Positions 9,650 to 64,000 of a stretch of 64,000 nt of DNA are shown piece after piece. The translations under genes were made by a program, and so were the position numbers. Every line of letters starts with the position of its first letter. The first letter of the stretch is position 1. The stretch is taken from the NCBI GenBank assembly GCA_965285935.1, contig OZ260661.1, positions 54,126,001-54,190,000 on the forward strand, read 5' to 3'. Source of the DNA: Ophelia neglecta (taxonomy: Eukaryota). A model generated the notes under the pieces. It had not been told where the DNA came from. It did no database searches and worked only from the letters and a program-made list of their open reading frames with translations.

Positions 9650-12600
9650 TTAGTCTATGACCACCGTGGTTATTATCTTGGTGTTGGGTTCGACCACCGA
9701 GTCGTAGTTGAAAGGATTGTACGGGTCATTGCCAGATGCAAGAGGAGCTTGAGTTTCATTTTCGGTGTTCTCTTCGACTGGAGATTCCTCGGCTGGAGCT
9801 TCTTCGGCAGGGGCCTCATCGGGAGGAGCCTCTTCCGCCGGGGTTCCCTCGCCTGTGGCCTCAGTCGTGTCTCCCTGCTCACCCTCAGCGGTCTCGGTCG
9901 CGTCGGGCTGGTAGCCGGACACCGAGACATTGTCCTCAGGCGCGTTGGGTGCTTGAGTTTCTTCCATCTGGGGGTAGGTGTGATACACGATGGGCTCAGC
10001 CCCCTCCTCAAGGCTCTCCTCTGGCAGAATGTTTGAGTTTCCCCGCAGGGTGTCGTCTGTATTAACCTGGGTGAAAGCAGGACCCGTGTCTTGGTTCTTC
10101 ATCGGCTTACTGTACAAATCCTCCACATCCGGCGAAGTAGCCGCCACCGGGATCACTCCGTTGTGAACTGCCGGGTCATCTAATAAATATACTACTATTA
10201 AATATTGCCTAATTTTGGAGGTTTCCGATTACTTCTCTTCTTAATTCATTTGTCAGATTATCAGAGATTGTATTTTATTACAAGTTCGAACGAAACAAAA
10301 CTAGCTTATTTTTCTCACCCGATTCTAACACTGGATTGACATGGAGCTCGGCCGTGCTGTCTTCTGAATGTGAACTGGGCGGCCGGGGATTCTCAGCATC
10401 ATGTAGTAAAGCGTCTCTACAGGTGACCGGTCGAGGAGAACATATCATTACAGCATGCATTCAATTTCTCTCAAAAACAGGTCAAATATTGTACTTTACG
10501 CACAAGTGTATCGAGTTTGCAACTCTTCCGTTTGTACAGGTTCTGTTTTCTAACAATAATCAATATGGCTATAGTTATATAAGCTTCCTGATCAAAAATA
10601 TAAACCAAGTTGTCATTTATATAAATCAGCTATAGCTAGGACGTTTGTTCGCCTCAGAACTACAAGTATGCCTACAAAGAATTTAGAAATGGACATGCCT
10701 GTTATCTGCTGTGCCAGATACTATGACATTGTCAAACTTACGCGCCAGGCACTGACTTTCTTCGGATCAGGAACACGATAAGGATGACAGCAGTCACCAA
10801 CAGAAGAAGAACCATGGCAGATGAAACTGCGATCACCCAGGCTGAAAATAGATTAGACACTCCACTTTAAATATGTAAGTTCATTCTCTTTCGGATGTGC
10901 AAAAAAATCGAAATTCTTAGCAGGCTCTTATAACAATGCGATCAAATCTGACCTGCAACTAATGCAGCTTGAGTAAGGCCTTCAGTGGTGCCCTCTGTCG
11001 CCACTCCCGGTGTTACATTGTTAGTGATTGGTGATTGTGATTGTTCAGTTTCTGTAGCTGGTCTAGTTGAGGTGACAAATCCACCTGATACCCTCGTCTG
11101 CTCAGTTGTTAATGCCGTCACTGGGGGCTGTGTGGCAATATCTTTTGTAGTTGAGGTACCAGTATATAATTCGTCAGTTATAGCAACTGTGCTACCTGTA
11201 TAAACAGCTTCCGTTTCCCGGCTCCCCGTGGACTTGACTTCATTCGCTCCAGTTCCAGGGCTTTGAGTTTCTGTAGTTTTTTCAGTGCCCAATGATGTGG
11301 TTCCCGTTAACGGTGTTACCGTGCCTGTACTTCCGAAATCACTTGTTATGCTACCTTCACTTACACTGGTTCCCGTACCCGGTAGTACAGTGCCTGTACC
11401 TTCTGAATCACTTGTAATACTTCCATCACTTACACTGGTTCCCGTACCCGGTAGTACAGTGCCTGTACCTTCTAGACCACTTGTAATACTTCCTTCAATT
11501 ACACTGGTTCCAGCAGACGGTATCATAGTGGTTGTACCCTCTGAAACACTTGTATTACTTCCATCTCCTTCACTGGTTCCCGAAGATGGTATCATAGTGG
11601 CTGTACCCTCTGAACCACTTGTACTACTTCCTTCACTTACACTGGGTTCCACTGAGACAGTACCTGTACGTAGAGTTGTACAATGCGTTTCATATATCTA
11701 TGTATCACATACATTGTTCAGAGGTGGGGCTCAAATTGCAAAATTGAGGATCAGTTCCTAGTCACTGGGTATGAAAATTCTTACTAGGGTACAGGCAATG
11801 TTAACTGTACTAAATGTTAAAGTGACAATGCTTCAAAAGTATATAAGTCAAACAAACTAATCTTTTTACACCTTTCTGTTTTACCATTTTATCACTTTTT
11901 TCATATGTTTAAATCTTGTTGAAATTGCATGACTTCAGTAGCGACCAGTTCCTTTGCTATTGTAACTTTACTAACTCTGATAATAGTGTGTATCTTTAAA
12001 AACGTGCATTGTAGAAGTTAATAAATATGTGATTTGATTTGAGTAAAATTAAAGTACCGGACACGGCAGTTTCCGTAGGTACTGCACTGGAAGGAGACAT
12101 CGCTGCGGAGGTCTCTAATGGTGTACTTGAGGTGCCATCCACCGAGGTGGGCAGTGTGGGCTCCGTTGCTGTTCCGGTGCTAACCACACCGCCATCAGTG
12201 GATAGAACTGTAGGCTCTGATGTTGTCCCAGACTCTACTGTGGCAGTGCCAGGAGACCCAGTAGTTGACATTTCGGTTGAAGCAGGCGATTCTGTCAAAA
12301 CAAAATACACTAAACAATAAATAAACAAGTAATGTTGCTTAACTCGGCCAACTATATATAGGCAAGCCACTTATATTATTGCACCAAGCGCTTTTCATAA
12401 TACCGTAACTCGAATAAGAAAGCAGGTTAGGCCCATAACAAAATCATGTGTATCTAGCTCACTTTTCGATAAATAACCATTTAATACGGTAACTTCATGT
12501 TAATATGTAAGCCAAACAGCCACTCTATCTATCGAATAATGCTTATGTATACTTAGTCACCAACTCAAAGCAATTGCAAGCAAAACGTCGTGCACTAAAT

Positions 12601-15600
12601 ATATGAACACACACACTAAATGACTGGCTTTTTCAACACATCTATGGAGATAAAATCACTTACTGCTGAAAGTCTGCGTCCCGAGTGAAAGTGGATTAAA
12701 TGGGATGCAACGAAACATTTTAAACAGAAACTCGAAAATTAAAAGATAAAACCTAACTTTATAGCTTTTCCCTATAAAACTAACCTGTTGATGTAGAGAA
12801 TTCTGTAGGTTCCAATGTATCGACATCTGTCAATGTCCGTGTACTTTCCATACTGCTGAAACTAAAGCTGTCAAGAGAGGAAGGGGAGATGGCGGTGGTA
12901 ATTGTATTTTGCGATGCCGCGTTGGTATCAGGCGAGGTGGTGGTAGTCGTAGTAGGGATGGTAAGCGGGGTTAATTCTACAGGTGGTGAGGTCCCTGATT
13001 CCGCACCTGCAGTCGACCCTATACTAGTGTCCATACTACTGAAACTAAAGTGTATTATCGAGACAGGGGTGGTGGGAGTGGGGCCGGGAGTTGGATTGTC
13101 GGTGGGGTTGGGGGTGGGGTTGGGGGTGGGGTTGGGGGTGGGGTTGGGGGTGGTTTTGCTAGTGCTGGCAGTGCCTAGGTTAGTGGTGGTAGAGAGTGTG
13201 TGGAGGTATTCGGTTATGGAGGTTGTAATTGAGGTCGTTGCGTCATAGTCTGTGGTTTCAATTTCAGCGGGCGTTCCAGAAGAGGTATCTGGGGATGGGG
13301 TGGTTTCTAATCGAGTGGGTATACCTGAGGAGGTATCTTGTGAGGCGGTAGACGGCTCACTTGTCTGTATTTCTGCGACAGTGCTAAAAGTAGTTTCTAT
13401 TGAGGATGAAAACGTTGATTCGTCTATGGGAGTTGTTAATGCAGTAGTGGATTCAACAGGCGTGGTTGATTCTCTTGTAGTAGTCGTTTCTGTGTAAGAA
13501 GTAGAGTCTTCTGCCGTTGTTTCCAAACTGGCACTTGTTGATTCTCTTGCAGTTGTTAATTCCTCTGCTGTGCTAGCTATAATAATAACTTAAAGCTATA
13601 AACTATGTTATACTTGTAGGCGTCAAAGCCAGAATTAACTTATTACCATCCAACAAATACAACACAAATTTATAAATGAGGCCCAACACCTAATATAATG
13701 AAGCAAAACTCAATTGGCACTCAGGTCAACACTTCCACAGCAAACTAAAGACTTCCGCCAGCACCATAAACGATGCTTTCTTATGTAACAAAGCAAACAA
13801 CTACATAGCGTTACCTCTAACAAACCCCAAGGCTTAATTATAATACAGATAATGGCCGAATGCATTTCTCTTGATAACGTATAATTCAGCATCAGATAGG
13901 GTGAAAAATAGATGGAGTTAGGTGAACCGAACATCATAGGTGTTATATAACATTATCAACTGGCAGAACGTCTTCTAGTTGTAACTTAAATGGCTCTTAT
14001 TGCAAATTTATGATAAAGTGTACATGCACAACCTGGAGTTCCTGGCGTTGTTGGAGTCGTCTCAATTGTCGATGGTATTTCTGTAAAAATTGGACAACTA
14101 TTTATATATCGTTATATATTTTATTTGCCACATTAAATATTAAACCTCTTTCCAAACAAATGCATAATAACTTTAATAATTTGTTGTATATAAAACCACT
14201 TACCTATATTTGCATAATTATCATGATAATCAGCGAAAATATGTTATACATGTATTATAATCACTTTATGCCTAACATTACTAGAATACAAGAAGCGAAA
14301 CAATTAAATATACCGTTATAGGCCTATTAGATTTTATGTTTAAAATGTTCTGTGACTATATACTGCTTAGTGTTGGTCTATTTTTTTCTGCCATTTGAAG
14401 ACACTCCTTATTATGGAACTGGAATGCATTAGACTGGGAATGAACTAAAAGAGAATCCTTAGAAAACATTAATAGTTGGAATAATCAACCCAGAAGTAAA
14501 CGGAATATATAATAGTTATGGGGCAAAAATATAAAAAAGGTCATCAATCGATACTATTGAAATCTGTATTTTATTAGATTTAGTAATTTTGTCGTTTCCC
14601 GGTCCCTGGTCCAACTAACTGAGTAGTATGACTAGTAAGTCAGTGTAGGAAATGTTTGAATTTATTTTGGATGAACAAAGCTATATTCATAGTAGACACT
14701 ACCATTGACCAAGATCAACAAATGACTGAGATATAAGCTAAAAGATAATGGAATTATTACTCCAATCGCTACACGAAGGTAATACTAGAAATCGTCAATT
14801 TGGGACTGTAACTCAATATATGCTTATCTTGTTAAGTGTTGTTCGTTGTATATACTATCGTAATCTGATCGCAGATTTTTATGTATAATGTTGTTTACAT
14901 TATTTGTGGAAAAGCGCGTCGAAAAGTATAAAGTTAGTTTTGCATAGTCGAGCATCACTTGATTGGTTAATCAATTTGACGAAAAAAGTTTGAAGCAGTG
15001 AAATATATACATCTCTTTTACAATTACCAAAATTTGTTTCAATAAGAATAATTAATGGTAGGTTCAAATAAAATAGTTCCTGCGAACAATTGCAAGGTTT
15101 ACTTTTCTTCATAAGTTAATCATCAATCGTCTCTTATACGTCCAAGTATTGTTTGTACGCTTTTTTCCCCCAAGATATTAAATGAGACGGTACTTACCTG
15201 ATACTGTGGAGTCCATGGCGGCCACCGTAGTAGGGACTGTTTCCGGGGTTGTTGTGTCAGGTGTTGTTTCGGAGGTAGACCGTAGTGACGTAGAACTCGG
15301 GATGGTAGTCATATCAGTAGACATGAGCGAGGACGAGGTCGTGTCGATTGGATAGGTGACATTTGAGCACAAAGCATATCTGACTGTATCGCAGTTCTGG
15401 TCTGATTTCCACGGGTAGTGTACTCCAGTGGCTGGTGATTCTTTTCCCAGATAACCACAACCAGTTACAGGACTACCAGGGTACCAGTTTGACCAGCCAG
15501 TCATTGTTGAGCCTGAGGTAGAGAATATGAAATACAGCAATTAATTTGATATATACATATCATATCTAGCAGATAATGGGAGCAAATGAAAGAAATTGCT

Positions 15601-18600
15601 TTGAGTAGAGCTTGCAGATAAGTACCATTCTATGAAAGATGATGTGTGGCTACATGCTGCGATGCATTTAAAGATGTAGTTTGATCACATGATTGTTTTA
15701 CCTTCTACCCATTCCCAGTCACCACGATGCAAACCAGTCCATAAGCCATTCACCCAAGGACCTATTAGTCCTTCACTGCTGTAGTTTGCATTTAGTTCGG
15801 CTGAAACGCTATCAATAATGTCGTTTTCGATTGTTGCTAGCCAAGCATCACTCGCAACCTCACAATTACTACGAGATGTATACCAATCTGTGTCTGAAGT
15901 GTCTTGTGAATAAACATGGAACCTTCGGTCTCCAACATCAAACGTAAAAGCACCCTCCATTTCTGTAGAGGTACCTGTAATAACCAGAATTCAGAGACGT
16001 CAATTATTTCTCATGCATGATGATCAATAAATAAATATAAATAAACATTTTATTTCCTTAGAATGTGCCATTCTTGCAGGAAACTACATTTTACCTGATT
16101 CTAAATCACCTATAGGGATATGTATCACATTGAAAGAGCAAAATTTGCGTCAGTTTTATACGCGTTACAATTAAATTATTTAGTTATTTATTTTGCACTA
16201 TAATCGACCCCTTTCTTATAATTATATTACTGTCCTTGGAAATATTTTGTATTGATAAACGTGGCCGCTGGTGACTTTTATAGGTAATGCACACAACTCT
16301 ATTAGTTCACTAGCAGCACCTAAATCAAATGTTTCGTTGGGATCGACCTAACAGATGTGTGAAATTTCCCAACAAAACTCATCTGCCGCCATGAAGATGA
16401 CCGTACCTCTGTACGGCCATAACTACCTACACTGTGACTGACAGATAGTGTGATTGGTCAAACAGCACACGTGTCAAGCCCAAAAAAGAATCTTATTGTC
16501 TTTCTTCTATTGTTTTTCGTATTTTGCTTTGTCCGTTTTTTGCTTTTTCGTATAAACTTGGTATCGAGAATAGAAGGGAATTACTCTTTATGAACATTTG
16601 AAGTTCATGAACAATGTACTGAAGCAAGGAGGAGTATTTATTTATTTATTTACCGGAGTAGTATGACCAGATTACATTCTCCCTGTTGGCGTTTAGCGGT
16701 TTAGATTACACAATTCACAAACATTGGATGAGATGAAAATATAAATGATGCAGGGCTTTGCTAGTTTAGAACACATGTAACTAATATGCTTTTTAAATAA
16801 TTTGGATCCAGCCATACACCAAGATATTTATAATCACTAAAACTTGTTTCAGTACAGACCGTTCAAATTCCAGTTAAATAGCACAGTTGTATACTGACAA
16901 TCTTTTGGAAGTTTGGTATGTTAACTGTTGAGATTTATATGTAAACAATTAAAAAAATATAGCAAATCAGTTTATTTTATGCCAAGCAATTCGGTCTGAT
17001 TTTAAAGGAAGATGTCACCGTCGACAGCATCTCCATCATGTATTAGATGCATGAAACAAAACCGGAACCATGGGGCTCTCTATTAATATGAAGGGTGGCT
17101 TCGCAGATGGCGAAATTGTGTGCGAAAGTGCACAGGAATTCATCAAATGCAATAAATGTTTTGGAGAAATGTTATTGTCTCACCTGATTCGCAAATGTAA
17201 TGAAAACTGGTTGACGACTTGTGATTACCAAAACGCCATTCATTTGATGGATCACCCAGGTTTGATATATATCCGGATGTTTTCTCCGGATCGGTTTCCG
17301 GCAGGTCAGGTAACCAACTTACGCCACCTTATAGGAAGTTAAGTAAAGTTTGTAATATATTTCGCCTATTATAAGCAAATAATTCATCACATCGGAAAGA
17401 ATGTATTTCCAAACATCTATATTCGGGAGAAAGTTGTTGTTAGGAACCAATCAGAAATTATTATTGACACATATATTGACAAATGTTGGCCTCTTTACGG
17501 GACGGGGGGGGGGGGGGGGGGGGGGGCTGGGGGTCGAACAAACATCATTGATACTGGGAGGCTGAAAATGAGTCCACGCGATTCCTGCCATCAATCGCTT
17601 CCTCCCTTTATCGCAGCATTGCCAGATTGCTTCCTTTTTTCGTATTTTAATTCACTTACTTGAGGGAATCAAGTTAATTTCTGCTGCGTACTCGACATTA
17701 TATACTTATTATGGTAAAGCAAGTTCCTGTTTCCCAATTTAATGAAATGTGCACCCAAGCGAATGTGTCGACCAATACTCAAATACCCTTTGTCTTTCAA
17801 TGAATGAATAAAGTGGCTGGTTATAACCTGGTTTCTCTTTCTTTTTTCAACCGGACTATAAACAACTGATATATGAGCATTTGAATTTTACCAAAAGTTT
17901 GTAACCAGGTTTGAACCCCGGACTCGGATGTGGCAGGCTCCCATGCTTGAACTATTACGCCACGAGTTCATATTAATAGCTAGCATGTAAATTTTCTTAA
18001 TGGTGCTGGGTACAACATATTGAAAGCAGGTCAACCACAATTTAATCAGCTGGAGGTCAGGACCTAGGCTACATTCTCGCCAAATCGGTAGTTTTTGAGG
18101 TAATTTGTGCACAGACATACACCTACGGACACACACACTCACACACACACCCTCACACACCCTCACGTTCGTGTATTTTCTTACGAGATCGGACTAGGCT
18201 TAGGAGGTCGCATCATTTGGACCTGTGAGATACGCGAGTAGTTCGCAGGTCCAGTGAGGTCGCCCAGAAACACACCATGATCTCAGAGGGCAAACTATTG
18301 GTCTCCTAAATCAACCAAGCTTGACCTCCAAAGGCCCAGTTAAAGAAACACTAGGGACCGCTTGTGTTTAGCTACTGTGTTGCTAAGAATGTTTTGTGTT
18401 TAATTATTCGAGTAGGTAAGGTTATTTTGTGTTAAGGCTAAGGATGTTTTGAGTATAGGTATCTTTTGTATTAGATATTTTAGTCGCTAAGAATGTTTTC
18501 TGTTTAATTATCAGAATCGCTAGGGATATTTGTGTTTAGTTATTAGTAGAAAAGCCAAGGGTGCCACGCATTCAATTATTACGGTGGCGAGTTAAGATTG

Positions 18601-21600
18601 TGTTTAATACTCAATATATATTAGATAGAAAGTGTTTAGTTTTGGAGGGGGTTAAACGCGCTCAGGCTTGATAAGTAAAGCTCCAGGTCTTCTCCGAATC
18701 AGCTCAACTTTAACACCGCTAAAAGTAAAAGGCCATTAAGAGCGATGGCCCGTACTTGACCCGTTTTGTGACAATTACCTTTAGTTTGGTGAATTCCAAA
18801 CTTACTCCGTAAGCGAAATATATTTTGCCACAAGTTTTGGTCTATTTCAGTCCGTCCCGGGACATAAGCAAAACACTGTTCAAGTCACATGTTATCACAT
18901 TGTAAGAAAGTATCATGTTGCAGGTTAAATGTTAAATGTATGGGTTTTAACGTCCCTTTCAACACTTGAGAGGTCATATCGGGACAGGGAGTCTCTTGGA
19001 AAGATGAGGCGAAGGTCTGATGAATCACTCCCCCCGACACAAGGTTAGGTTGAAAACAGCCCTCTCAAGCTGGGTTCGAACTCAGACCTTGGAGGTCATG
19101 TTGCAGGTTCCAGTGTGGATCAGTCAGGACCAGATCTTATTGTTTGTCTTTAATCTGTCTTTTCCAAGTGTTTTAATATTAAACGCCTTGAAAATTTCCT
19201 TGATCATGTTAAAATTTCTGTCATACTACAACCCTAAATGCCATGACTGACAATTGTCTTAGAATACTTCTTCTACTTTTCTAATACAGTTTATTTTTAT
19301 ATATAATTATGTTTTGTAGAGAGGGATATTATTATTTTTCTTAACAAGCGACGTAAATAAATAAATTGATATAAAGCGATAGTTTGGGGTTTAATATCCC
19401 TCTAACATCTTACTCTGGTTAAGATTAGTTTTTCCAATGTGTATGCGAGGATCATTACTCAGTCTTATAGGCCTAGCATTGTTCTAGTTGTTAGTTTTAT
19501 TTTCACATTGTCCCATGTATATTTTATGTATATTATTACCATGTGACTTTAAGCCTTGTTCTTATTTTTGATATTACCATTGCTATTATCATTAACATCA
19601 TTATAATAATATCAAATAGGTTTTACATTTTACCAATTAAGGAGAGTCACAGGGGTAATTATTAAACATGTATATTTTATTTCATTTGTTTGAAGTTCTT
19701 GGTTGATAGATTGAAAATATAGAAAGAAAAACATGGGTAGCGGACCTCATTTTTTTGCTGTGTCCTGTTGAAAATTCTTTGAAAATAGAGGCTTGGCTCA
19801 GGTTTTATAATGGGAGTATATGGGAAAATGGGCCCAATAGTTTAAGAGTGATCAGAAATTGCTTAAAAAAGATTCAACAAGTCTGATTTTTTCTTCTTAC
19901 TTTGTTGTACACATATCAATCTTTCAAATGATTTATAATTTTCATATGCTTACGGCACTATTTTTTTCTGCATTGAACAAAATTCATTGCCCAAATGTTA
20001 AAATATTGAAATTGTGATATTCAGCGACATTTGACCTATGACCTTGAGCTTGAAAAGGTTAGGTCATGATAGTATATGATGCACAATAGTTGGTTGCCTA
20101 TATGGGGGTACTTTTTTCAAAGCAATGTGCATCATAAGTCTAGATATATTTCATTTTATTCTTTTTATAAATTTTGCTATTGGTATAGGTTATTATGGTA
20201 ACAGGCCTGTTTTTGGGTGAGGCACAATCACATATTTTCAAAGTCTTGCCGATTCCCATGAAAGGAATAATGGCGAATATTTGTGTATTGGTTTCAACCT
20301 TCTGCATGATGTTTAATTCCCCCCCCCCCCCCCAATTTTCCACCATTTTGCCAATGGTAGCCCAGTGACCAGTCTGAGATTATGAGGCTTACTGCATGTT
20401 GCAATACGTTTCAAATTGCACACTACTGTATGTTCTTTTTGCAAAGATCCACTCAACATGATGTTCAATACAAGGCGGTTTACTGCCCTGTGCCCCCCTG
20501 TGAACTACGGCGAAAGTCAGCTATGAACTAATCGCACGTTTTTGAAGGTCTGAATACTTATGAATATAATTTAAATAAATAGTAATTACAATACAGGTAT
20601 TAGGAATACAACATCGTATGAACTTACTCGCATCTGCGCCACCAATCCAAGTCCAAGTGTCGCTTGAAGAGAATTGGGCACCAAACCAGATTTCATCCTG
20701 ACCAAATGTGTCCAGATTCTGATCAAGGAAAGCTTGGTCCTCCTTATCAGCTATCACCGCTAGGTCTCCTCCGCTAGCCTGGCAGGCGCCTCTAGCTGTT
20801 GACCATGAACCGCTTGACGAAGACACCTCGTAACAAACTTCCCCACCCACTTGGCATATTGATACGTCTAATTAAACGAAATACAGATTAGGGGATAACA
20901 TATTTTTCTCATGGAGAAGTGCTATGACGTACCAACAAGTATTATGGACATTATATAGTACGATATATGGACAGACAGAATATACTGGTGATTAACATCA
21001 AACTACGAATTGTAAATTTGTGTTTTCAATAGATATTGAAAATTCATACTTTAGAATTAGGTTAGATTACATTTGCATGTACAATGTACATGTACGTATG
21101 TGTTTATGTATGTGTGTTTATATGCGCGTGTGCGGGTGTGGGTGTGTACAGTATGTATGTATGCAGATATCGATGTCGATGTATTTTTAGTTTACAACGC
21201 ATATAGATATATTAATGTAAGTTTTTTTTAAAATAACCATGCAACCTGAAGCAAAGAAACCTTTGGAAGGGGATCTTAACATACTGTATATGTTGTTTAC
21301 AAAGAAACAAAAGAAAAACCTCATCAGCTTTAAATACGTCTGCCTCAGCCTGATGGCAAATTCATCTATATCTATCTACAATATTATCGACAAGTTGGCC
21401 GATCAAGTAGGAACCAAATAATAGGCCTATTTATAACTACAATTGCAGCAAACCACGATAGCATGTTACCACATTCTGGCCTGAGTCAATGTGCGCCTGA
21501 ATGGCGGCAATCTCGGGCACAGATAACGGTACCCCCCCCCCCTCTCCGTGGGTTGGGTGGGGGGCCGCATGCGCGTTCACGATTTCTCGGTAAAAGGGGT

Positions 21601-23599
21601 ACTTTTTGGGCTTTGATCTCGAGCCCGGAAAAGGGGTACATTTTCGTTTTTTTCTCCCGAGAAATTGAAAAAAAAGGGTCTTTTTTATCAGCCTCCCTAG
21701 AAATTGGAAAAAAAGGTTTGGATAGTTACCCGAGAATGGGGGTTGATAAATGAGAACACCCCTTCCATCTCCCACGCCTTTCTATGTGTTCAATTTAAAT
21801 ATTTTACCTCATGTTGATGCCCCCTATAAAAGGGGGTTAGGTGCTTCCTGGAGCCTAAGAATAGGGGGGTGATATTTCATCAAGCCTGAGTTAGGGGGGT
21901 AAAAACGGTACTTGTATCAGTATGGTAGTTTCAAAGAAATCGTAACAAAAACCTGTACTTTAGGCCTATAGCATGTCATATTAAAAAGTATGGGTCCGTG
22001 GAGGGGGGGGGGTAGCTGTCGGACGAGCTACGCCATCCACGGCCTCATAATTTACGAGTACATGTGCTCTTCTCTGCCACTCACTGGCTGTCTGGTCAGT
22101 ACACAGGTACGCGAGGCGCTTGTCCGTTCCTGCCTACTATTACTAAAGGTATGATTCTACGTACACTGGCTGTGGGGCTAGTATTTATTGGGACCTTCCT
22201 AACTTCGCTGCTACCTTACTTCAGCGGTGATTTTTGGCTGCCGTTGCTATTATTGGGAGTAAATAAATCACAAAAGACCTTTAATCGAACCTGGGGTTGG
22301 TTTTATTTGATTTAAGTGGTCTCTCGACTAAAAAGAGACTAATCTTTTCATGTACATGTAATGCATTGGTTACCGTGCCTGAACATAGTTCACGCTCCGC
22401 GAGTCCGTCCATCATCAAGTTTATTTCTATGAAGAATCATTTCTGATCCACACATTTACAGTTAATAAAATACTTACATAAAACACATAACCAGAATATT
22501 GATTGCAGTAACGTTATACACACATATATATATACAAGACATGCTAGAAATGCCACCAAAAAACCTGGTACATCAGTGTCCATATTTTTCCCCCGCATGG
22601 CCGGTGGCCATCATTCCCATTATGAGTAATGACCACCGCCAACACAAGGAAAAGAATAGCGTAAATCTATAGCTCACAGGACGACCAGAGCGCACACCTA
22701 CTGCTAGCCTTTGAATAATAATATATATCTCTATATGTTTCAAGGTGTCTATATAGGTCAAACCGATTGTAAGGACATACCTTTAAACAGTATATCTCTT
22801 TTAACGAATAAATCATTAAACACGGGTCTCACAAATTTGCAGCCAAGAAACACGCTTAAAGTAAGATATCAGCGACCAAATGAAGGTCCTGACAAGCTGC
22901 TAGTGTAACGGTGCGGCATTAATACTATGCGCACTGCGGATATTCATACCTTCAGTTGAAGTAGGTATAGTATCCGTCACGCGCCTCGGGTACCTGTGGG
23001 TTAGTGTATGGAACACTCGCTCTTGTTCAGAAAATATCGCAGATTGTTTTTAAATAAAGCTGGAATAAAAGTATTGTTCTACAATACGGATTAAAATGTT
23101 TAAACCACATATATGCTATTTGGCGGGTGACTGAAAAGGGGAAACGATTCCTGCACATATTACAGTAGGCCAAGTCAGGCCTATACCCGAACGTCATGTT
23201 ATCTTAAATTTGATTGTTAAAATGATAATAATCCTGCATTTGGATCGGTTATCAGTTGAATGGCTTGAATGGTGAACGCTTATTATCAAAAAGACGCGTA
23301 TGCATACACTCGAATTAAGGATTAAAAATTTTCAAATGCATATAGGCCTAGGCCTATATATCATTTAGACCGATGATTTTTGGTGTAAAACGTCCAAACG
23401 TTTTCAAGTATATTCCACCATATAATGTGATCCTTAGATTTTTTTCATCATTACGGCTAGTTAAAAATAGCACAAGCAATTCGTAATATATCTTTGAAAA
23501 AAAGAAAGACATACTTTGCGCTATCACTCCTTCAAGACTTAATACTGCAAAAATAATGTGTATGATCCTAGAAGAAGGGCCCATTGTCCTGAGATCCAT
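9650..23599 (-). CDS. Gene A: type I membrane protein (signal peptide, 2 CTLDs, Ser/Thr/Pro mucin stalk, TM, acidic Tyr-motif cytoplasmic tail), ~1189 aa
   Basis: Phase-compatible GT-AG exons: 23599-23515 (MDLRTMGPSSRIIHIIFAVLSLEGVIAQ), 20867-20628, 17327-17184, 15974-15702, 15512-15198, 14080-14033, 13576-12785, 12291-12058, 11663-10953, 10841-10742 (TM AWVIAVSSAMVLLLLVTAVILIVFLIRRK), 10416-10319, 10179-9650. Sum 3570 nt, divisible by 3, ending TAA. CTLD hallmarks: CY..W..AR..C...GG.LA, WFGA/WTGL, WxW, YICE/ALC. Confidence 0.85.
11299..11643 (-). repeat. Coding minisatellite: 5 x 69 nt (23-aa unit SVSEGSITSDSEGTGTVLPGTGT) in the gene A stalk
   Basis: Five consecutive 23-residue units in the translation; the DNA ACACTGGTTCCCGTACCCGGTAGTACAGTGCCTGTACCTTCT is repeated. 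Confidence 0.9.
13080..13153 (-). repeat. 12-nt coding repeat encoding (TPNP)n in the gene A stalk
   Basis: Tandem GGGGTTGGGGGT units; TPNPTPNPTPNPTPNPTDNPTPGPTP. Confidence 0.9.
15198..15974 (-). CDS. Gene A exons 4-5 (15974-15702, 15512-15198): CTLD2 and start of stalk
   Basis: DWYTSRSNC...WLATI...LWTGLHRGDWEWVEG | STMTGWSNWYPGSPVTGCGYL...PWKSDQNCDTVRYALC; canonical splice sites, phase 1. Confidence 0.88.
17184..17327 (-). CDS. Gene A exon 3: C-terminal half of CTLD1 (not in ORF track)
   Basis: SGVSWLPDLPETDPEKTSGYISNLGDPSNEWRFGNHKSSTSFHYICES; 144 nt, phase 1-1, AG acceptor, GTGAGA donor. Ends in the CTLD-terminal YICE motif; size matches equivalent exons of genes B (138 nt) and C (144 nt). 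Confidence 0.8.
18362..18545. repeat. Degenerate ~30-35-bp minisatellite (GCTAAGAATGTTTTGTGTTTAATTAT-like)
   Basis: Recurring GCTAAG(A/G)ATGTTTT and TGTTTA units. Confidence 0.5.
18927..19095 (-). mobile_element. 5'-truncated tRNA-derived SINE in gene A intron 2
   Basis: 14-bp TSD TCATGTTGCAGGTT at 18913-18926 and 19096-19109; B-box-like GTTCGAACC on the minus strand near 19075-19083; 3' end ...TGTTGAAAGGGACGTTAAAACCCATACATTTAACATTT. Confidence 0.75.
20628..20867 (-). CDS. Gene A exon 2: N-terminal half of CTLD1
   Basis: VSICQVGGEVCYEVSSSSGSWSTARGACQASGGDLAVIADKEDQAFLDQNLDTFGQDEIWFGAQFSSSDTWTWIGG; AG at 20868-9, GTAAGT at 20622-7. Confidence 0.9.
22478..22583 (-). CDS. Possible alternative first exon of gene A (long hydrophobic leader)
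   Basis: ATG at 22583 gives MDTDVPGFLVAFLACLVYIYVCITLLQSIFWLCVL, then a phase-1 GTAAGT donor (22472-22477) compatible with the 20867 acceptor. Confidence 0.4.
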
Positions 23600-29186: not shown

Positions 29187-29337
29187 CAGGGACGGATCCA
29201 GGAATTTCTAGGGAGGGGGGCCCACCATGCATCTAGTTGCCTATGTTTTGGGCGCCTGGATGGGCTTGTAAAAAAAAATGGTGGGGGGGGGGGGGCAGGC
29301 GCCTTCCCGTGCCCCCCCCCCCCTGGATCCGCCCCTG
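29187..29337. mobile_element. Second, shorter copy of the same MITE family with a 5-bp TSD
   Basis: CAGGGACGGATCCAGGAATTTC...CCTGGATCCGCCCCTG; shares internal CTAGTT.CCTATGTTTTGGGCGCCTG with 3693-3935; AAGCC duplicated at 29182-29186 and 29338-29342. Confidence 0.85.
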
Positions 29338-33811: not shown

Positions 33812-33822
33812 GAAGTGTATAT

Positions 33823-36800: not shown

Positions 36801-37277
36801 GACCCCACAGTGCCAAGTGTCATTTGGACAGCGTGCCTCAAACTTCCATATCTTAGAGGTCAACTGGCCTTTTTAGTGAAGTTGTGCACCAGAAACACTG
36901 GCGTGTCTCGGGATTGTCACATGTGTGACCAACAATACGTGGATTGTGTTGAACACTTGGTGTGCCACTGTCCGCGTTACTCTGAGCGACGCAATTTATA
37001 CTGGGAAGAGCTAACGGACCCACTGGCCGTCATGGACTCCACCAGACTCCTCTGGATGGACAGTGGTGAATTTATAGATACATTCTTCAGTGGCAACGGC
37101 ATTGATTCTGACGTGGAAATTTTTTTTGGGAATTAATGCCAAGTTTTAGTATGCCTTAAGACACAATTTGACAAACGATATACTTTATAATTACTTAACG
37201 TAAACGTTCTATGAGAAAAGTTTTGTAAACATTGTTGTGCTCCTCAACTTGAAGGAAAAAAAAGATAACAACAACAA
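33823..37277 (+). mobile_element. 5'-truncated non-LTR retrotransposon (LINE): APE endonuclease, reverse transcriptase, C-terminal CCHC; two disabling lesions
   Basis: APE motifs LSEHWL, GVYMP, IIGDLN, IDH, SDHLPV (33835-34968). RT motifs FRGISL, QNGFR, LDTSTAFD, VRQGSVLGP, LQADD (34947-37136). CHMC..EHLVCHC near the C-terminus; A-rich and (CAA)n tail at ~37256-37277. One 1-nt frameshift at ~34915 and one in-frame TAA at 35442-35444. Confidence 0.93.
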
Positions 37278-52800: not shown

Positions 52801-55800
52801 GACGTCGGTGGCAGCCTCCTCACCGCCAGAGCTCGGTATCCGGGCCACCATCGACGCCGTCCCGAAGGAGATCATAGTCGCAGACAAACACTCCTGACTG
52901 TGGACGTATTTCTCCAGCACCCGCTTCACATAACTGCGCATAGCGAGCCATTCCCACTCCTCCACATAAAGAGAGGAGTCCAACAAAAAGGCCATATCTA
53001 TTCCAATACAAATCTTTTGAAGCGGCTCTCGGGTAAATGGTGTTTGAGTTGTATTAATTGGGTTTGGAGATGAAGAAAGAACTGACTCCTTTGGGGTCAC
53101 TGGCCTGCTTGTTGAAGTTTTGGTAGTTGTAGTGGACTTGGATGTCGTTCTAACTTCAGTGGTTTCGGTTGTTGGTGGTGGTTTAGTAGTTTGTTTTAAT
53201 GTAGATGATGGCCTAGGAGTGGGAGTGGTTGTGGCAGTAGTAGCAGTAGTGGTAGGGGTTGTGGTACTGGTTGTTGGTGATGAGGTAGTTGTGCTGGGGT
53301 TTGTTGTAGCTATGGTTGGAGAGGTTGTACTGGCCGGGGTGGTGGTCGTCGGTGTAGTTGTACTCCTTGACGATGTCGCTGTCGATCCAGACGATGCGGG
53401 TCTTGTTGTTTCAGAGGAACGAGTTGGCACCAGATTCGGATCAATCTCTGTGTATTAATATTTGATTTAATCAGTGCAAGGAAGTCATTTGCAGTTGGAC
53501 ACATATCCATATACCAGTGTATAGAGACAGTATACTTACCAAGCTCGCATATGAAGTTATGTTTTGAATAACAGTCCGCATCGGACCACTGGAATAACTC
53601 ATCTCCAAACTTTTCGAGCCTTAAACAGTCACCTTTGTGGCCTGGCTGACCGGACTCCCAAAATGTAGTCCTCACCTCTTGACCTGACCCAATTGTGCAT
53701 AAATGTTAGTTTTCACAAAAAAAAGGAATGATATGCGTTGCGTAGAAATTAGATAGGTCGACTTGTTTTTAACGATTAATAGATTATAACCTTGAACCTG
53801 CCCCCGGAATCTGGGGACATTCATGGAGGTAAACCCTATAGGGCCTGATATTCAGGTATTACTAGAGGTGCTTACCATCCAGCCATGTCCACTGGACTCT
53901 CGTCAAGCCGATCCAGAAGCCGTAGATGTCGGTGTCTTTGCCTGGCAGAGCCTGACCTATCCTGTGATGGATGCTCGCGTCGTCTACCTTCGCCAGCCTG
54001 GCTCCTTTCTGATGGCAGATCTGCCGTGCCATGAACCAGTTGACCTGGTCTCGGGCAAACATAAAACACCGGCCTTCGCTCGTCAGAACTTCCTGGTAGG
54101 TCTGAAGGGCGGCGGCACACAGTGGGTTAGTTTCAACTGTCAAAAAAAGAGAAAACGATAATGTAGCTACTTACATTCGACCAGTGGAAAAAATTGTTAT
54201 GCGACAGAAGACGTTGTACAATCTCCTCCATTTCCGTTATATATCACGTCATCAACTGCGTTGGCCCAACGTCACATTTTTTGGCCTGCGATCGACCAAT
54301 CAGTACGTGTGCATTGCAGGTGTTCTCATTTATTGGAATCCTGATAGGTAGACTAGTGTAGTACGTAAATTTCGAAACAAAAATTTACATGCTTGCTTTG
54401 TAGCTCTGAACAAAATACAAATAAGCAAATTATTTGATTTCAGAAGTTTCAATGATATTGTAGCCTCCCTAGAGTGATAGAATTTTTGTAGATACACCTG
54501 ATTTACCAGTTTCGCAAATATATCCGACTTTAAAAGCACATGGGCGATCCTGCCACACGAAATTTTGGCTCGGGATAATCATGACACATTCCAAGTCCGG
54601 AACCCCGTGGGTCGGGGTGCCGGAGTCCCAAGCACTGAAGTTTCCAATACCTGAATGAAAGTTTATAGTAATTACAAAGAAATGCCAATTATTTGTTTTA
54701 TGCGGTGTATGATCCCAGAGCGGTCATATTGAATTGCAATGTGGATAACTATAAAAAGTTTTAAACATAAAATTACCTGTTTGGCTATCACCATACCATT
54801 TCCAATAGGTATCTCGTTTCTTGCCGCCAAGCCAAATTGCAACCCATCCTTCAGACTGCATTGCCTATAATATGAATAAACTGACATTAGGCCCAATATT
54901 TTACAGAATCACAATTCATACATGATTTTGTATAGAATTCACCCAGAGAGTACTATAGGCTAGAACTGAACAAAGAAATATTGAAACACAGGGGTCTAAT
55001 TCAAATGCATTTAACATGGTAATTTTATTTCTTGTTAAAATTCCGATTTAAGCTCATGTTTCATTACACCCGAAAAAGTGTAACTAATGTAGTTGCCCAG
55101 TTTTAAGAAATAAACGAATAATAATATTTAAATGAGTGGTGCTTAGACTGATCAGTGTAGGCGAGATATATGTAGAGGTATGAATTGGCCATATATTTCT
55201 GTAATTATTATAATATGTTAGAGGACCTACTCGTTTGACTAGTTCGAGTGCCAGTTCGTCCCTGGTGTAGGCTAGATGGCCCTGGTAGGAGTGACAGTGC
55301 CTCCTGGCAGTCTCCCAGTCGGCTGTTACCGACGGGCTAAGGTAACATCGGCTGCGGTCCCCATCCGCATCCACGTAACAACTTAAACCTGAACAATTGT
55401 ACTGCTTAACTTCACATTATTGGGATACGTGAAATAGCAATAGGCAATATATTTACTACAAAAACATAAATCTTAAAATGGGGTTTTAAAGATCATATTA
55501 TGCACAATCGTGGGTTTAATTTGTGCTATCAGTGTTAATTTGTGTTATAAACTTGCATGCTAAAATGGCAAGCTTTTCAAGATTACACGGTATATGTTTA
55601 CAAATCATGTTCAAACCTTCCTTTGGTATTCTTAGGGAGCGTTCATTATTTATGGCCGGGGGGGGGGGGGGTGGTAAATTTGGGGGGGACACTTTTTTTT
55701 CAACCCATTTCCATGGGGGGGACAGTTTTTTTTCAACCCATTTCCATGGGGGGGACAGTTTTTTTTTAGTCTATTCACAGGGTGTGCAATTTTATTTAGA

Positions 55801-57380
55801 AATATATATTGTACAAAAGTGTGTAGTGAAACTGATAAAACTTTGATGGGGGGGGGGCAATTTTTTTCCACCTATTTCTGAGGGGGGGCAATTTTTTTCC
55901 CACCTATTTCCAGGGGGGGGGGCAATTTTTTTTTGACGTACTCATTTCAAAAATTTACCACCCCCCCCCCCCCGGCCATAAATAATGAACGCTCCCTTAC
56001 TAGGTCCTACTGAATAGTTATCACCATCGACAGCGTGAAATTGCTGTATCATTCAGCGGCGAACGACGAGAAATAGCATTTCGTTGTTTGCGTTATCATT
56101 AGAACACTTGGACCAATAGCATGCTAATATTGTTTGTCAGCAATCATATTTACATCACAAAGTCGTGCATTGGATAACCATAAGAATACTTTTTATATTG
56201 GTAAGAATGAAAAATAGACCTTGTAAAAATACGTTCAGCGTCAAATGTAGGTGAACCGTTTCCAATTATAAGAAATTACACCCTCGCGACATAAAACACA
56301 GTCAGAGCCGTTGCGTGGTAATGAAAAGTACTTGCAGTTACTTGCACTAGCTGTTACGACTAGCAGTCAAGTCAATAATAACTGTACCGTGGTCGTACGG
56401 TAGCGCTACCTCCTCTCTTCAATACTCATATAAAACATAATATGTCATGTTAAAATCAACAAAAGGTCATGACCCATGACAACTTCATTATATTTCTAAT
56501 TGTCAGCCATCTTGCCCCCAAGGTGTCTCAGTGAATGGGGCATGGGAAAGCAGCTGGCTTCCCATCAGACGAACCACAAACCTAACATTTATTGCACTCA
56601 GGATCTGATACTTCTTTTTACAAATAATAGATATACAAAGAGTTTTTGGGTATTCAGAGAAGAGAAACCAACGTAAATATAAACCTTATAAGTATAAAAA
56701 ATAAATCAATTGCCATTGCTTTTATTGTGGCGTAGGCCTACATGCACTAAAACGTGAAATCGTGGGAGTCAAGTTTGTTAAAGTATTAGGAATTTACAGC
56801 CATCTTTGTAACTGATATAACATTCAGAATATGAAAATATTAACCATTTTACATGCGTGGCTGCACACAAACTTAAAGAAAGTTATTCCATTATTATTTC
56901 ATTATCTTTCGGTACATACATCTCAAACTGTTTAAAAAGATGTTATATGTGCGTTATGTGAAAGGAATGACAGGTTCTTAATAAAAATTGCTTTTGTGAA
57001 TATATCTTCGTACTTATAGTACTGATTTGCGAATAAAGTTACAATCGACAGTAATGCTGTACACGGCGTAAATTGGTTATATATTTTCCATTTTAATCAC
57101 ATAATGATTTACTTTATGATAGGTTTTTTTTGTGCTATTTAACATCTAATTGTTTCATTTTTCTCAATATAAACAGTGGAACTTAACGCCTAGGGCCTTT
57201 GTCTCTGTTGAGCCTTATCAATCTCACCAGCATTGAAATAAACCATATTGTATATGTAATTAGACTTAGATAGGAATCAATTACTATGGTTTAACACTCA
57301 CCTCCAATATCAATTTTAACGATGTAAAAGGAATAGCACGGAGCGATCGTAAACACAGTCAACAGCCATCTCGAAAACAT
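49886..57380 (-). CDS. Gene C: type I membrane protein (signal peptide, 2 CTLDs, Thr-rich stalk, VWA domain, TM, basic Ser/Arg tail), ~778 aa
   Basis: Exons 57380-57302 (MFSRWLLTVFTIAPCYSFYIVKIDIG), 55388-55231, 54864-54777 (AMQSEGWVAIWLGGKKRDTYWKWYG), 54650-54507 (ECVMI...WQDRPCAFKVGYICE), 54136-53876, 53683-53540 (DCLRL...WSDADCYSKHNFICE), 53447-52329, 50583-50502 (TM IATTVTVVSLVVVTGLIILLVVFFVRR), 50147-49886. Sum 2337 nt; all GT-AG. The first exon is the least certain. Confidence 0.85.
52460..53010 (-). other. von Willebrand factor A (VWA) domain in gene C exon 7
   Basis: CIGIDMAFLLDSSLYV...MRSYVKRVL...MISFG...RNIDGAL..M...VF...PHMGVVITKG...A..AK..GIVLSSIVIG...DIASDP follows the matrilin/collagen VI-type VWA pattern. 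Confidence 0.85.
55635..55996. mobile_element. PIF/Harbinger (Tourist-like) MITE in gene C intron 1
   Basis: ~45-bp TIRs GGGAGCGTTCATTATTTATGGCCG(n)TGGTAAATTT / AAATTTACCAC(n)GGCCATAAATAATGAACGCTCCC; TTA on both flanks (55632-4, 55997-9); internal ~30-bp subrepeats. Confidence 0.85.
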
Positions 57381-60831: not shown

Positions 60832-63800
60832 TCAATAGTTTTTATAACTGTCTAAGTGAGTTTGATAGAGACTGCCACTTTTAGCTTCATGCCATGAGAA
60901 GGTATTTGTTGAGTAAGGACTTTCTTGTAGCACTATGGAACTGGCATATCTAGGCATCCTGAAGTTCCAGTCTCGCCATTCTATGTCTCTCATAGCTGGA
61001 TTTTCTTCAATATCATCAACTGTTGAGGAATCGGAGCTAAAAAAAAACAAGATAGATGCAATCAGTTATGCAGTGAAGAGTTGTTTGATAATGAACTCAA
61101 CAATAATCAATAACAATACAAGAAAATATTTCTTTCGTGCTCTTTGAAAATAGAATTTTATCACCTACCCATCTAATAGGGGTTTAGTAGGTTTTCTCTT
61201 GCTAAGTATGAACCCTATGACTCCGGTCGTCAAAATCAAGAAAGCTGTCGCAGCGCTACATACGAGCCCTGTATGATTAAAATGTGTTTCAAAATAATAA
61301 AAACAAGTTTGTTTACGCACTAACATGTCGGCTCCAGGAAAAATGTAGTGAGTTTTGTTCTGAATAAGGAAACGATGAGAATTTATGTGTGGGGATAGAC
61401 GGAAAAAAATTACGTCTACCCTCCGCCACCCTGCCCTACCCCTTCCCCCCCCCCCCACCCCTCCCCTCCCAGCTCCTCGACGACCTAGACGGAAATATAT
61501 GCGAAGCAATCTATTCACTTTCTAAAGTGAACCAGTTACGCTTCTATTGACTGAACTCGTGCATCGTACGATGATATAAAAGCAAGAAAAAAACACAACC
61601 CAAGGATACCAGGACTGATCACTCAAATCAGTGGCAGTCTGTTTCTGCTAGTCTTATAATTATATACGATCGAGTGTGTATTGGAAGCATGCTTTGATAG
61701 GTAGACGCAATTGGTTAGAAAAAATCTCACAACACAGAAGTTCTTCAATAAACAAGCTTTGATAAGAAAACGTGGTCTATTAAGAAATTCTCAAAGCTTA
61801 CTCAGCTAGCTGCGATACAAGAATAGGGCACAAAATATAGGAGCGCACTCGTAAGGAGAAGAGCTTCCACTAAAGAAGTCTGACTCCGATAAGTGAGTCT
61901 GACCTAATAAGGTGTGCTTTTAGCGAAACAAGCTATGAAGCCCTTTCAGATGAAAAACGTCTCCAAATGATGCACCCCCCCCCCCACCTCCACCCAAGGA
62001 AGCATGCTCAGGTGGCAGTACACGCTAAAGGAGGCGTGTTATAAAGAAAAAACATCCTGTAGAATGTAGCGATTAAATAAAATGTTGCCTAAAAGTCTGA
62101 AACGCTGGATGCAATAATTTGTCTTCAAGTTTGTAGTCCGAATGTGTCCCCCGTGGCCAGCCATTCAGAAAAAGTCCCCTTATCAAATCTGATAAAAATG
62201 ACCCTTCATCTCTTCCCACCTAAAGCATGACACATGGTTCTTAAATAAGGCAACATTTTTACATACCAATGGCAGGTCGAACTCCAATAAGACCGGAACT
62301 GTCACCAGTGAAAAGGTTTGGTTGTTGTGACACACCTGACTGGACGGCAGTTGACACATCGGAATTCGTTTTGGTATTTGGTGTGACCTTGGTAACTACG
62401 AGGTTCTTTGTATGTTCCTCATTCCCAACAGTAATCTTTACGGTCCTATCGTTTCGGGCTTCTGGGTAGGATAGCGTAGATTCCTGCCACAATGTGCTCT
62501 CCTTTGCACTGTCAGGCTTTGGGGTTCTGGTAGATGTAGCTTCTGGTGAGGTCAGTGCTGCAGTGAAGACGTTTGCTTTTGTTCCATCATCTACTGACAT
62601 GCTTGAGGACGGCAATTTAGTTGCTGAAGTTTCAACTGCACTTGAATTGGAACCTTGGAATTTTGTTGAGGTTCTTCTCCTTTCATTGGCTGACGAGATT
62701 TCTGTTGTTGTTATTGCTGGGTCTCTTGACCTCGATATTCCCTCTGTCGTAGTAACTGACAATGGTACTTGAGAAACTGACCCTGTGTGGGATGGGTAAG
62801 ATGATGTATCCGATTGATCCGTAAAGTTTGGAGTTGTTTTATCTGAAACGAAACGTTCCATGCTTAGCAACTATCAGTTTGGTTTTACGAAGTATGTTTA
62901 TTATCATCAATGTCAATTTTTTGTGGAAAATATACAAAAAGGGAAAAAATTACATTCAATTATTTCCTATTATAATAATCAGATCTGATGCTGAGAGTGT
63001 TGATAATAAAAGCAATATTTAGCAGCGGTACAGTTAAGACTGGATGACTTAAGAAGAGAGATTATATCAAATCGGTTCATCATATTTCAAACTAACCATA
63101 GCATTGTGACACAATGCCTAAAGATGAATGTTGTTTACTCATAGAAGACAGTACATGCAGCAAAGGCCCTATTCCCATACCCCCCCCCCCTCCCTCCCTC
63201 CCCCACCAAGCAGCGACTAAAAGCCCAAGCGATAGATACCGGCCTAGTGACGTATTCTCGTCTCCCGCCTTGAGGAATAAGATGGTAGCAACCAGGTTAT
63301 ATGTATACCTGTACATGTAGCCGACGTCTCAAGGCATCTCTTTTTGTCATCATCCCATAGTAACTCGGCAAGAACACATGGCCTGTTGGGATAAATGTTT
63401 CCTTCAAAACATGATACATAGAGGTTGCAAGATAAACAGGACTGGTAGTCACCGTTCGGCATCCCAATACAGTTGTTAACGCCTCTCTGGCCTGTAGGAC
63501 ACGGAAACACACTCCTACTGCTAATAAAAACCGTGGCACGTGTTACTTCCGGTTCAGTACTTGAAAAAGACGCCGGTGTTGTCCTGTACAAATGCGAAGT
63601 CACATTTCCATGTTTCCCAACTGTTGCGGATGGTTGATCTTTGGTTCCTGGGTTCCCGGAAACGGTGAGCATTGGTGTTGTGCTTGACCTTACTCTCACA
63701 GATGTTACAGTGATAGGATTGGTATTACGGGCCTCCGATGTACGGTCGTCGGTGATCAAAGATTGTCGTGTTCGTCGACGCCGAGTAGATGATTTGAATG

Positions 63801-64000
63801 TTGGTAATGTCGACGTCAATTCAGGCATTGAAGTAGTATGACGATCACTTGATGGCTGCGCACTAGAATAGGAGTAAAATGTAGTTACCTTATCGCTGTT
63901 TCCACTTCCTGAGAATGGAACAGTCGGTCCCATTTTTGGTTTTGTCGATGCAGATTCTTGCTCTGCTGTTTCTGTGCTGATTGTTGATCCGACCGTGGTT
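60832..64000 (-). CDS. Gene D (5'-incomplete): membrane mucin with a chitin-binding type-2 (CBM14/peritrophin-A-like) domain, TM and short tail
   Basis: Exons >64000-63309 (frame open to the window edge), 62842-62267, 61268-61169 (TM GLVCSAATAFLILTTGVIGFILSKRK), 61036-60832 (ends ...SYKNY*). GT-AG sites; same phase 1/1/2 pattern as genes A-C. Confidence 0.8.
63313..63501 (-). other. Cys-rich chitin-binding type-2-like domain in gene D
   Basis: CPTGQRGVNNCIGMPNGDYQSCLSCNLYVSCFEGNIYPNRPCVLAELLWDDDKKRCLETSATC; C..Y..C...C....L.WD....C spacing typical of CBM14. Confidence 0.75.

Follow-up and report, generated by a model that had tools for sequence, protein, structure and literature searches.

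A tandem cluster of modular type I membrane genes with paired C-type lectin-like domains in Ophelia neglecta: a probable adhesion or recognition family

Gene models and shared exon plan

This study describes a cluster of modular membrane-protein genes in Ophelia neglecta, located in a window of 64,000 nucleotides (nt) at positions 54126001-54190000 of contig OZ260661.1 (C1) of assembly GCA_965285935.1. The window has a GC content of ~38%, in a genome assembly of 762 Mb. Together with its flanks it holds five paralogous genes, all on the minus strand and arranged in the order D-C-B-A-E over ~72 kb. The same chromosome carries a sixth gene, F, at a distance of 65 Mb. Each of the six encodes a pair of C-type lectin-like domains (CTLDs) ahead of a transmembrane (TM) segment. 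A first-pass annotation of the window had described four co-oriented genes that share one exon chassis and carry swapped payloads. The open gene models with GT-AG introns and the domain matches presented below bear this out. The four genes are real, but the family is larger than four, with E in the left flank and F elsewhere on the chromosome. The neighbouring 20 kb to the left and to the right showed no additional CTLD exons.

Coordinates are window positions throughout. The right flank (L002) and the left flank (L004) carry their own numbering, where L002 4947 corresponds to window position ~68947 and L004 7091-9923 to about -2909 to -77. The minus-strand stop-to-stop frames comprise Cys/Trp-rich CTLD exons, long Ser/Thr-rich frames, short hydrophobic exons and terminal frames that end in a stop codon. 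Splice sites were picked by frame compatibility and consensus, and exons were spliced for local alignment only; Pfam, profile, fold and genome searches were run exon by exon. The resulting models of A to E have GT-AG introns throughout, translate without stops and contain 7-12 exons each. Gene A encodes 1169 amino acids (aa) in 11 exons, B 1054 aa in 9 exons, C at least 752 aa in 8 exons plus a weakly supported signal-exon candidate, D 1553 aa in 12 exons and E 431 aa in 7 exons.

A common plan runs through A to F: a signal peptide, CTLD1 and CTLD2 on two exons each, a stalk slot of variable content, a TM exon and a cytoplasmic tail. With the signal peptide at the N-terminus and the TM segment near the C-terminus, the models have a type I topology. 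A, B and E have plausible though tentative signal-peptide exons, and that of D was taken from the frame listing and junction scoring. The TM exon, annotated earlier as an 82-103-nt exon running from phase 1 to phase 2 in four genes, measures 100 nt in A, 103 nt in B, 82 nt in C and 100 nt in D, and the two added genes, E and F, have 82 nt each with the same phases. Ectodomain introns had been described as nearly all phase 1, which agrees with our count of 36 out of 37; the one that differs is in phase 0 and interrupts CTLD1 of C. The genes differ in what fills the slot: it is empty in E, A and B carry 0.55-0.66 kaa (thousand amino acids) of mucin, C has mucin together with a VWA domain, and D has four CBM14 domains with mucin spacers. 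Overall, stalk exons contain 36-56% Ser+Thr+Pro over 190-350 aa (44-56% in the pure mucin exons of A and B, 36-40% in the stalk exons of D), and the segments between domains are without Cys.

Genes A and B

Gene A starts with a tentative signal-peptide exon at 23515-23599, which has an ATG, a hydrophobic core and a phase-1 donor. CTLD1 consists of an N-half at 20628-20867 (phase 1-1; Pfam Lectin_C E 7.4e-8, profile 3-63) and a C-half at 17184-17327 (phase 1-1), which aligns with the other C-halves and lacks the inner Cys pair. The N-half of CTLD2 (15702-15974, phase 1-1) was recognized by alignment, and its donor falls at WEWVE|G, as in the other CTLD2s. The following exon (15198-15512) holds the C-half of CTLD2 and the start of the mucin stalk, its distal half being Ser/Thr/Pro-rich. 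Three phase 1-1 mucin exons complete the stalk, at 12785-13576 (56% Ser+Thr+Pro, no Cys), 12058-12291 (55% Ser+Thr+Pro) and 10953-11663. The third contains a tandem repeat at 11298-11650, with a 69-nt (23-aa) unit present 5.1 times at 83% match. A perfect 12-nt repeat (TPNP, four times) is located in the first mucin exon at 13101-13153. The TM exon at 10742-10841 encodes a hydrophobic 19-mer with a mean Kyte-Doolittle (KD) value of 3.15. It is followed by a small cytoplasmic exon (10319-10416, phase 2 to 1) and by the last exon with tail and stop (9650-10167), which has no Pfam match and is weakly similar to the tail of B.

Gene B has a tentative signal-peptide exon, from the open model, at 46629-46707. 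Its CTLD1 is composed of 46003-46281 (N-half, Lectin_C E 5.2e-10) and 44409-44546 (C-half, assigned by the C-half alignment and profile), again without the inner Cys pair. CTLD2 is composed of 44097-44324 (N-half, Lectin_C E 3.4e-7, donor at WMWID|G) and 42890-43072 (C-half, by alignment). Two mucin exons follow at 40169-41218 (49% Ser+Thr+Pro, with an alternative donor at 40142) and 39295-39903 (50% Ser+Thr+Pro), then the TM exon at 39073-39175 and the last exon with tail and stop at 38323-38818, which has no Pfam match.

Compared with each other, the tails of A and B are the only ones alike (z 3.3, a score reached in 3 of 200 shuffles), sharing the motifs LY[ST]KPM and NPV. The earlier annotation had listed a cytoplasmic tail as part of the common chassis. 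Its position is indeed alike in all genes, but the sequences are unrelated apart from this weak A-B similarity. The tails carry tyrosines and NPx motifs, and neither an immunoreceptor tyrosine-based activation motif (ITAM) nor a clear inhibitory one (ITIM) was seen among the listed tail tyrosine contexts. In the genome we found no second copy of the B tail, and it did not match the A tail either. A word-index search with the B tail gave no relative at E <=1e-3, which is weak evidence, as it covered only proteins of 0.55-1.75 times the exon length.

Gene C and its VWA domain

Gene C has a weakly supported candidate for the signal-peptide exon at 57302-57380, with an ATG, a hydrophobic stretch and a strong phase-1 donor. 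The N-half of its CTLD1 is itself divided, into part a (55231-55388, phase 1 to 0, Lectin_C E 0.0054), which ends at the phase-0 intron, and part b (54777-54864, phase 0 to 1). The C-half lies at 54507-54650 (Lectin_C E 0.014, profile 68-107). CTLD2 comprises 53876-54136 (N-half, E 1.8e-6) and 53540-53683 (C-half, E 6.1e-5, profile 62-106). A single exon at 52329-53447 then encodes a mucin segment and the complete VWA domain, followed by the TM exon at 50502-50583 and the last exon at 49886-50147, with a basic, Ser-rich tail and the stop. Upstream of CTLD1, in the presumed first intron, two tandem repeats of 33-34 nt with G-runs and T-runs occur at 55681-55766 and 55851-55932.

The VWA domain matches PF00092 at E 1.9e-12 over positions 1-165 of the 174-position profile, and the Atlas look-alike clusters are all VWA. 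A phmmer search of the exon against PDB sequences gave no match at 1e-3. A word-index search with the VWA part of this 379-aa exon was blank at E <=1e-5, again weak evidence, given that only proteins of 0.55-1.75 times the exon length were covered. A canonical metal ion-dependent adhesion site (MIDAS) consists of DxSxS with a downstream Thr and Asp. Inspection by eye found D-S-S-L-Y in C, with Tyr in place of the second Ser, as well as Arg at the Thr position and T-K-G for T-D-G, so that a full MIDAS is not present. These substitutions suggest that the VWA domain of C is metal-independent.

Gene D and its CBM14 modules

Gene D runs 4.9 kb beyond the window to ~68947, with its upstream exons at L002 473-4947. 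It encodes a signal peptide, two split CTLDs and four CBM14 domains of the peritrophin-A type. The first CBM14 directly follows CTLD2, and the other three are each preceded by mucin. The exon with mucin and the fourth CBM14 covers 63309-64000 and continues to 64295 in the right flank. The last mucin exon lies at 62267-62842, the TM exon at 61169-61268 and the last exon, with tail and stop and no Pfam match, at 60832-61036. The first-pass annotation had characterized D as a chitin-binding domain embedded in mucin. CBM14 and mucin are both there, but CBM14 in four copies and together with a signal peptide and a CTLD pair. The N-terminus of D had been chosen beforehand as a check on chance adjacency, and the CTLD pair found in the flanking sequence argues against it.

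The four CBM14 copies scored 22.3, 20.1, 18.7 and 14.6 bits in Pfam, compared to a cut-off of 22.1, over the full or nearly full profile. A profile of 24 copies matched PDB entry 4z4a at E 6.2e-8 and the CBM14 of chitotriosidase at 2.9e-4, with a weaker match to Avr4. The AlphaFold2 (AF2) model of the domain has a pLDDT of 85.8. Its top 12 Foldseek matches are all CBM14-fold chitin-binding domains, none of them at E <=0.001, and include chitotriosidase, Avr4, tachycitin and Der p 23 (peritrophin-A/tachycitin-type).

The CBM14-like exon, with the pattern DGDYQSC...RPCP...LVWDD...TC, occurs in at least 59 copies in the genome. Most are single-exon units in tandem arrays on several chromosomes, for instance at C12:61397029-61414417, C12:35962356-35971477, C5:11970878-11998402 and C2:33436687-33446973. 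This module is strongly conserved, with 17 invariant columns among 24 aligned copies. D probably gained its CBM14 domains by exon shuffling, which would fit with CBM14 being such a common single-exon unit.

Genes E and F

Gene E was found by local tblastn. It has two CTLDs recognized by Pfam, no stalk, the short TM exon and a tail of 81 aa. Its main exons occupy the stretch of the left flank given above (L004 7091-9923), and a tentative signal-peptide exon of the open model lies at 1982-2033. The tail is Pro/Tyr-rich and ends with a YAYINNN motif.

Gene F, on the plus strand at C1:119.356-119.364 Mb (L008, C1:119356001-119366000), follows the same exon plan with two CTLDs, a short mucin, the TM exon and an 893-aa tail on a single exon. 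This tail exon is charged, rich in Lys, Arg, Ser, Asp and His, and without a Pfam match. A relative of the F tail exon (P0151) with 42% identity was found in another species (ENA ERZ25069296:ctg20664, L009). Upstream of it, the same contig holds a CTLD2 C-half that is ~50% identical, then a mucin exon, then a TM exon of 82 nt whose phases are as in F. Hence, the F-type chassis is kept across species.

Identity and ligand motifs of the CTLDs

The N-half exons match Pfam Lectin_C (PF00059) at positions ~2-63 with E-values of 5e-10 to 5e-3, and several C-half exons match positions 62-107. These complementary half-matches on paired exons show that each CTLD is split over two exons. A profile of 10 C-half exons matches the last 45 residues of solved CTLDs, down to E 2e-16, including those of mannose receptor, MBP, SP-D and CD23; the C-halves of A and B were recognized via this profile only. 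Both halves thus match the CTLD superfamily, and the alignments show its conserved Trp and Cys columns.

The intron within CTLD2 splits a Gly codon right after WxWx[DEN] in all genes, with a shift of one residue downstream in D. The CTLD1 intron always lies 4-10 residues further on than that of CTLD2. This difference between CTLD1 and CTLD2 is consistent across the genes, which indicates that the CTLD pair predates the gene duplications.

The term 'lectin' in the earlier annotation, if taken in the sugar-binding sense, is not supported. Classical Ca2+-dependent carbohydrate-recognition domains combine EPN or QPD with WND and with adjacent Glu/Asn ligands of Ca2+ site 2. EPN or QPD together with WND occurs in none of the 10 aligned cluster CTLDs, nor, as judged by eye, in the two CTLDs of F. 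The triplet position reads LPE, SPV, SPD, SPL, TPT, QPG, LPR, QPN, RPN and APH, and the WND position reads WRF, WKS, WES, WYA, WQD, WSD, WSQ, WID, WWD and WIN. Closest to the canonical motifs are CTLD2 of D (QPN, WID), CTLD2 of C (QPG, WSD) and CTLD1 of E (RPN, WWD). Because the motif pair is absent, classical Ca2+-dependent binding of monosaccharides by these CTLDs is unlikely; they would be lectin-like by fold alone. We therefore rejected the classical sugar-binding C-type lectin as a description of these proteins.

Paralogy and age

In line with the earlier description of highly diverged paralogs that keep their exon architecture, the CTLDs of different genes are only 15-30% identical. Whole-genome searches nevertheless led back to the family. 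The best match of the CTLD1 N-half of B is the CTLD1 N-half of A (E 1.3e-7), that of the CTLD2 N-half of E is the CTLD2 N-half of C (E 1.3e-8), and the best matches of the CTLD2 N-half of C are F and E. For the CTLD2 N-half of D, CTLD2 of B ranks first at E 0.004, and family exons make up 5 of the 13 best non-self matches. Since the best genome match of each member is another member, though only weakly so for D, the adjacency of these genes is not due to chance. Within the family, A groups with B, because their CTLD1s both lack the inner (C2-C3) disulfide that is kept by the other CTLDs and their tails are weakly similar.

The identity of ~50% between the CTLD2 C-halves of F and its relative in another species, against 15-30% between paralogs, implies that the paralog splits are older than at least this one species split. 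The family had previously been called old and lineage-specific. Its age is supported in this respect; lineage specificity is suggested by blank searches of limited reach. A large profile search with five CTLD2 N-half exons returned 3774 matches, of which the top 150 are multi-CTLD proteins with 4-16 repeats. The summed scores of such proteins swamp any two-CTLD ortholog, so that this search is silent on orthologs.

Comparison with known systems

The cluster had been likened to the vertebrate natural killer (NK) complex and to CD93. The analogy applies to architecture and genome organization only. The NK complex, like our cluster, has diverged CTLD receptor genes in tandem. Its receptors, however, are type II proteins with a single CTLD, which form dimers and signal via an ITIM or an adaptor. 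The genes described here differ in their type I topology, dual CTLDs and tails in which no ITAM or clear ITIM was seen. A strict analogue of the NK complex was rejected, as the topology is wrong.

Group XIV proteins are type I, with one N-terminal CTLD that is without the classical sugar residues, sushi and/or EGF repeats, a mucin stalk, a TM segment and a shortish tail. Our genes resemble them in their type I topology, non-canonical CTLDs, Ser/Thr-rich membrane-proximal stalk and single TM segment, but differ by having two CTLDs, VWA or CBM14 inserts and a tandem arrangement. Pfam matches to sushi or EGF domains were absent from the scanned exons, and the remaining mucin exons are without Cys. 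Given the two CTLDs and the lack of EGF or sushi, we rejected membership of group XIV (thrombomodulin, CD93/C1qRP, CLEC14A and CD248), a group named in PMC514892. Tethered mucins (MUC1/4/16) likewise have a Ser/Thr/Pro-rich, O-glycosylated stalk on a membrane anchor, together with a juxtamembrane SEA or NIDO-AMOP-VWD module. SEA or VWD matches were not found on the scanned exons; the proteins would work in the manner of a tethered mucin without belonging to the MUC1/4/16-type family.

Rosetteless of Salpingoeca rosetta is a secreted protein. Like our genes, it combines a signal peptide with two CTLDs and with long mucin-like stretches rich in Ser/Thr (PMC4381721), a likeness of architecture only. 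Where our genes have a TM segment and tail, it carries C-terminal repeat regions, and it comes from a choanoflagellate, outside the metazoans. A two-CTLD head is also found in soluble proteins such as insect immulectins, group D1 of C. elegans and group F1 of fish (PMC514892), which differ in having neither a TM domain nor a mucin stalk. Matrix proteins of the Pif/BMSP type, with VWA plus chitin-binding domains, and peritrophin-type CBM14 mucins use our payload modules, VWA and CBM14, among low-complexity or mucin sequence (PMC11291548). In contrast to our cluster, in which VWA and CBM14 belong to different genes, these are secreted matrix proteins without CTLD heads or TM segments. The shell or cuticle context that this likeness may suggest is only a lead.

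To our knowledge, CLEC-38 has no mucin, VWA or CBM14 inserts and no such cluster. In architecture it comes closest to E. Like our genes, it encodes CTLDs on a membrane protein with a single pass, and its role lies outside immunity (PMC3130637). More generally, invertebrate CTLD families are largely lineage-specific, and architecture alone is no proof of kinship (PMC514892). For this reason we do not place the cluster in any named family, and file it as CTLD-headed type I membrane mucin. Since lineage-specific families of CTLD receptors are the rule in invertebrates (PMC514892), the cluster is interesting but not surprising.

A probable family for adhesion or recognition

We consider it likely that the six genes represent a lineage-specific adhesion or recognition family, shaped by tandem duplication and phase-1 exon shuffling. 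The family would have grown by tandem duplication. Its phase 1-1 ectodomain exons would have allowed modules to enter or leave the slot that separates CTLD2 from the TM exon. The sequence establishes the architecture, the paralogy and the identity of the domains, and the function is inferred from these. A non-canonical CTLD pair would be held above the glycocalyx on a stalk of adjustable length. This pair is probably Ca2+-independent and may bind a protein or an atypical glycan, and the proteins would act in adhesion or recognition, with extracellular matrix or another surface as the partner. For D, the most plausible role is to anchor the cell surface to a chitin-containing matrix, and C may link to the matrix through its VWA domain. 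The tails appear to diverge freely, which could give different intracellular outputs.

If the models are right, the cluster illustrates very clearly how receptors evolve by modules in nature, with one chassis that carries different payloads in its slot. We know of no previous description of a dual-CTLD head combined with CBM14 on a membrane anchor. D would then be a candidate, open to testing, for the means by which this animal's cells hold a chitinous matrix.

Several points weigh against an adhesion or recognition family. The proposed function is read from domain types, and chitin binding by the CBM14 domains of D is likewise a prediction from domain type. The CTLDs are without the classical motif pair, and the tails gave no Pfam match and no recognizable signalling domain in the exon scans. 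D belongs to the family mainly by its architecture, intron positions and adjacency, and its CTLD2 exons have no genome-wide match at E <=1e-3. Furthermore, the spliced models, including junctions and signal-peptide exons, were derived by sequence logic alone, and whole-protein orthologs in other phyla could have escaped the exon-by-exon searches.

Alternatively, the cluster might be a diversified complex for immune or self/non-self recognition, in which the CTLD heads sense microbial or allogeneic glycans and the tails signal. The clustered, co-oriented and strongly diverged paralogs with their variable payloads are what such a complex might look like, but the family is small, with six genes, and we saw no sign of recent birth and death and no pseudogene copies. 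CBM14 could recognize fungal or parasite chitin. No CTLD has EPN or QPD together with WND. Several tail tyrosines, including a YxN site in E, would suit signalling; against this, Pfam signalling domains are absent from the tails, and no ITAM or clear ITIM was seen. On balance, we regard the immune explanation as doubtful.

A more speculative idea is that the genes form a dual-CTLD/TM 'cassette-slot' system, whose phase-1 slot takes up different matrix-binding modules (mucin, VWA without a full MIDAS, four CBM14). Together, the proteins would couple an epithelium to a chitin-containing structure, for instance a cuticle, a shell matrix, the lining of the gut or the coat of an egg. Alternatively, the slot could serve a polymorphic self/non-self system. 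This is unlikely on present evidence. If the coupling is real, however, the proteins would form a previously undescribed class of linkers between membrane and chitin.

It is improbable that the genes encode developmental or neuronal co-receptors, with a CTLD head that modulates a receptor in cis or in trans and mucin as a spacer. The precedent would be C. elegans CLEC-38, which spans the membrane, carries CTLDs and regulates Netrin/UNC-40 signalling (PMC3130637, citing Kulkarni 2008), but the likeness to CLEC-38 is one of architecture only. E and F are reduced to two CTLDs, a short stalk at most, a TM segment and a tail, and F is kept in another species. CTLDs that do not bind sugar would suit protein ligands. 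The large inserts of A to D, made of mucin, VWA and CBM14, nevertheless fit better with contact to matrix or surfaces.

Finally, chance adjacency of unrelated CTLD genes, or an artefact assembled from decayed exons, is very improbable and largely refuted: CTLDs are abundant in this genome, the CTLDs of D have no significant genome-wide match to their neighbours and the models come from DNA sequence only, yet five models of 7-12 exons each are open with canonical splice sites, all six genes have the same TM-exon phases and the same intron positions within their CTLDs, nearest-relative matches are reciprocal inside the cluster, and the same plan is kept in another species.

Neighbouring sequences

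Other elements occur between and around the genes. A 150-aa open frame on the minus strand lies downstream of E at L004:4751-5200 (window about -5249 to -4800). Its start, MGYLLYGAFLLLCVQ, resembles a signal peptide. Pfam gave no match for it, and it probably represents an unrelated gene for a secreted protein. The long intergenic region between A and B contains an ATG-started open reading frame (ORF) of 142 aa on the plus strand (25277-25705), without a Pfam match. The same interval holds a non-LTR (long terminal repeat) retrotransposon at 33835-37136 on the plus strand, which lies outside the family and consists of three ORF pieces with matches to Exo_endo_phos (E 4.8e-9) and RVT_1 (E 4.9e-19). 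A second reverse transcriptase (RT) ORF is located upstream of D, on the minus strand at L003:8119-9999.

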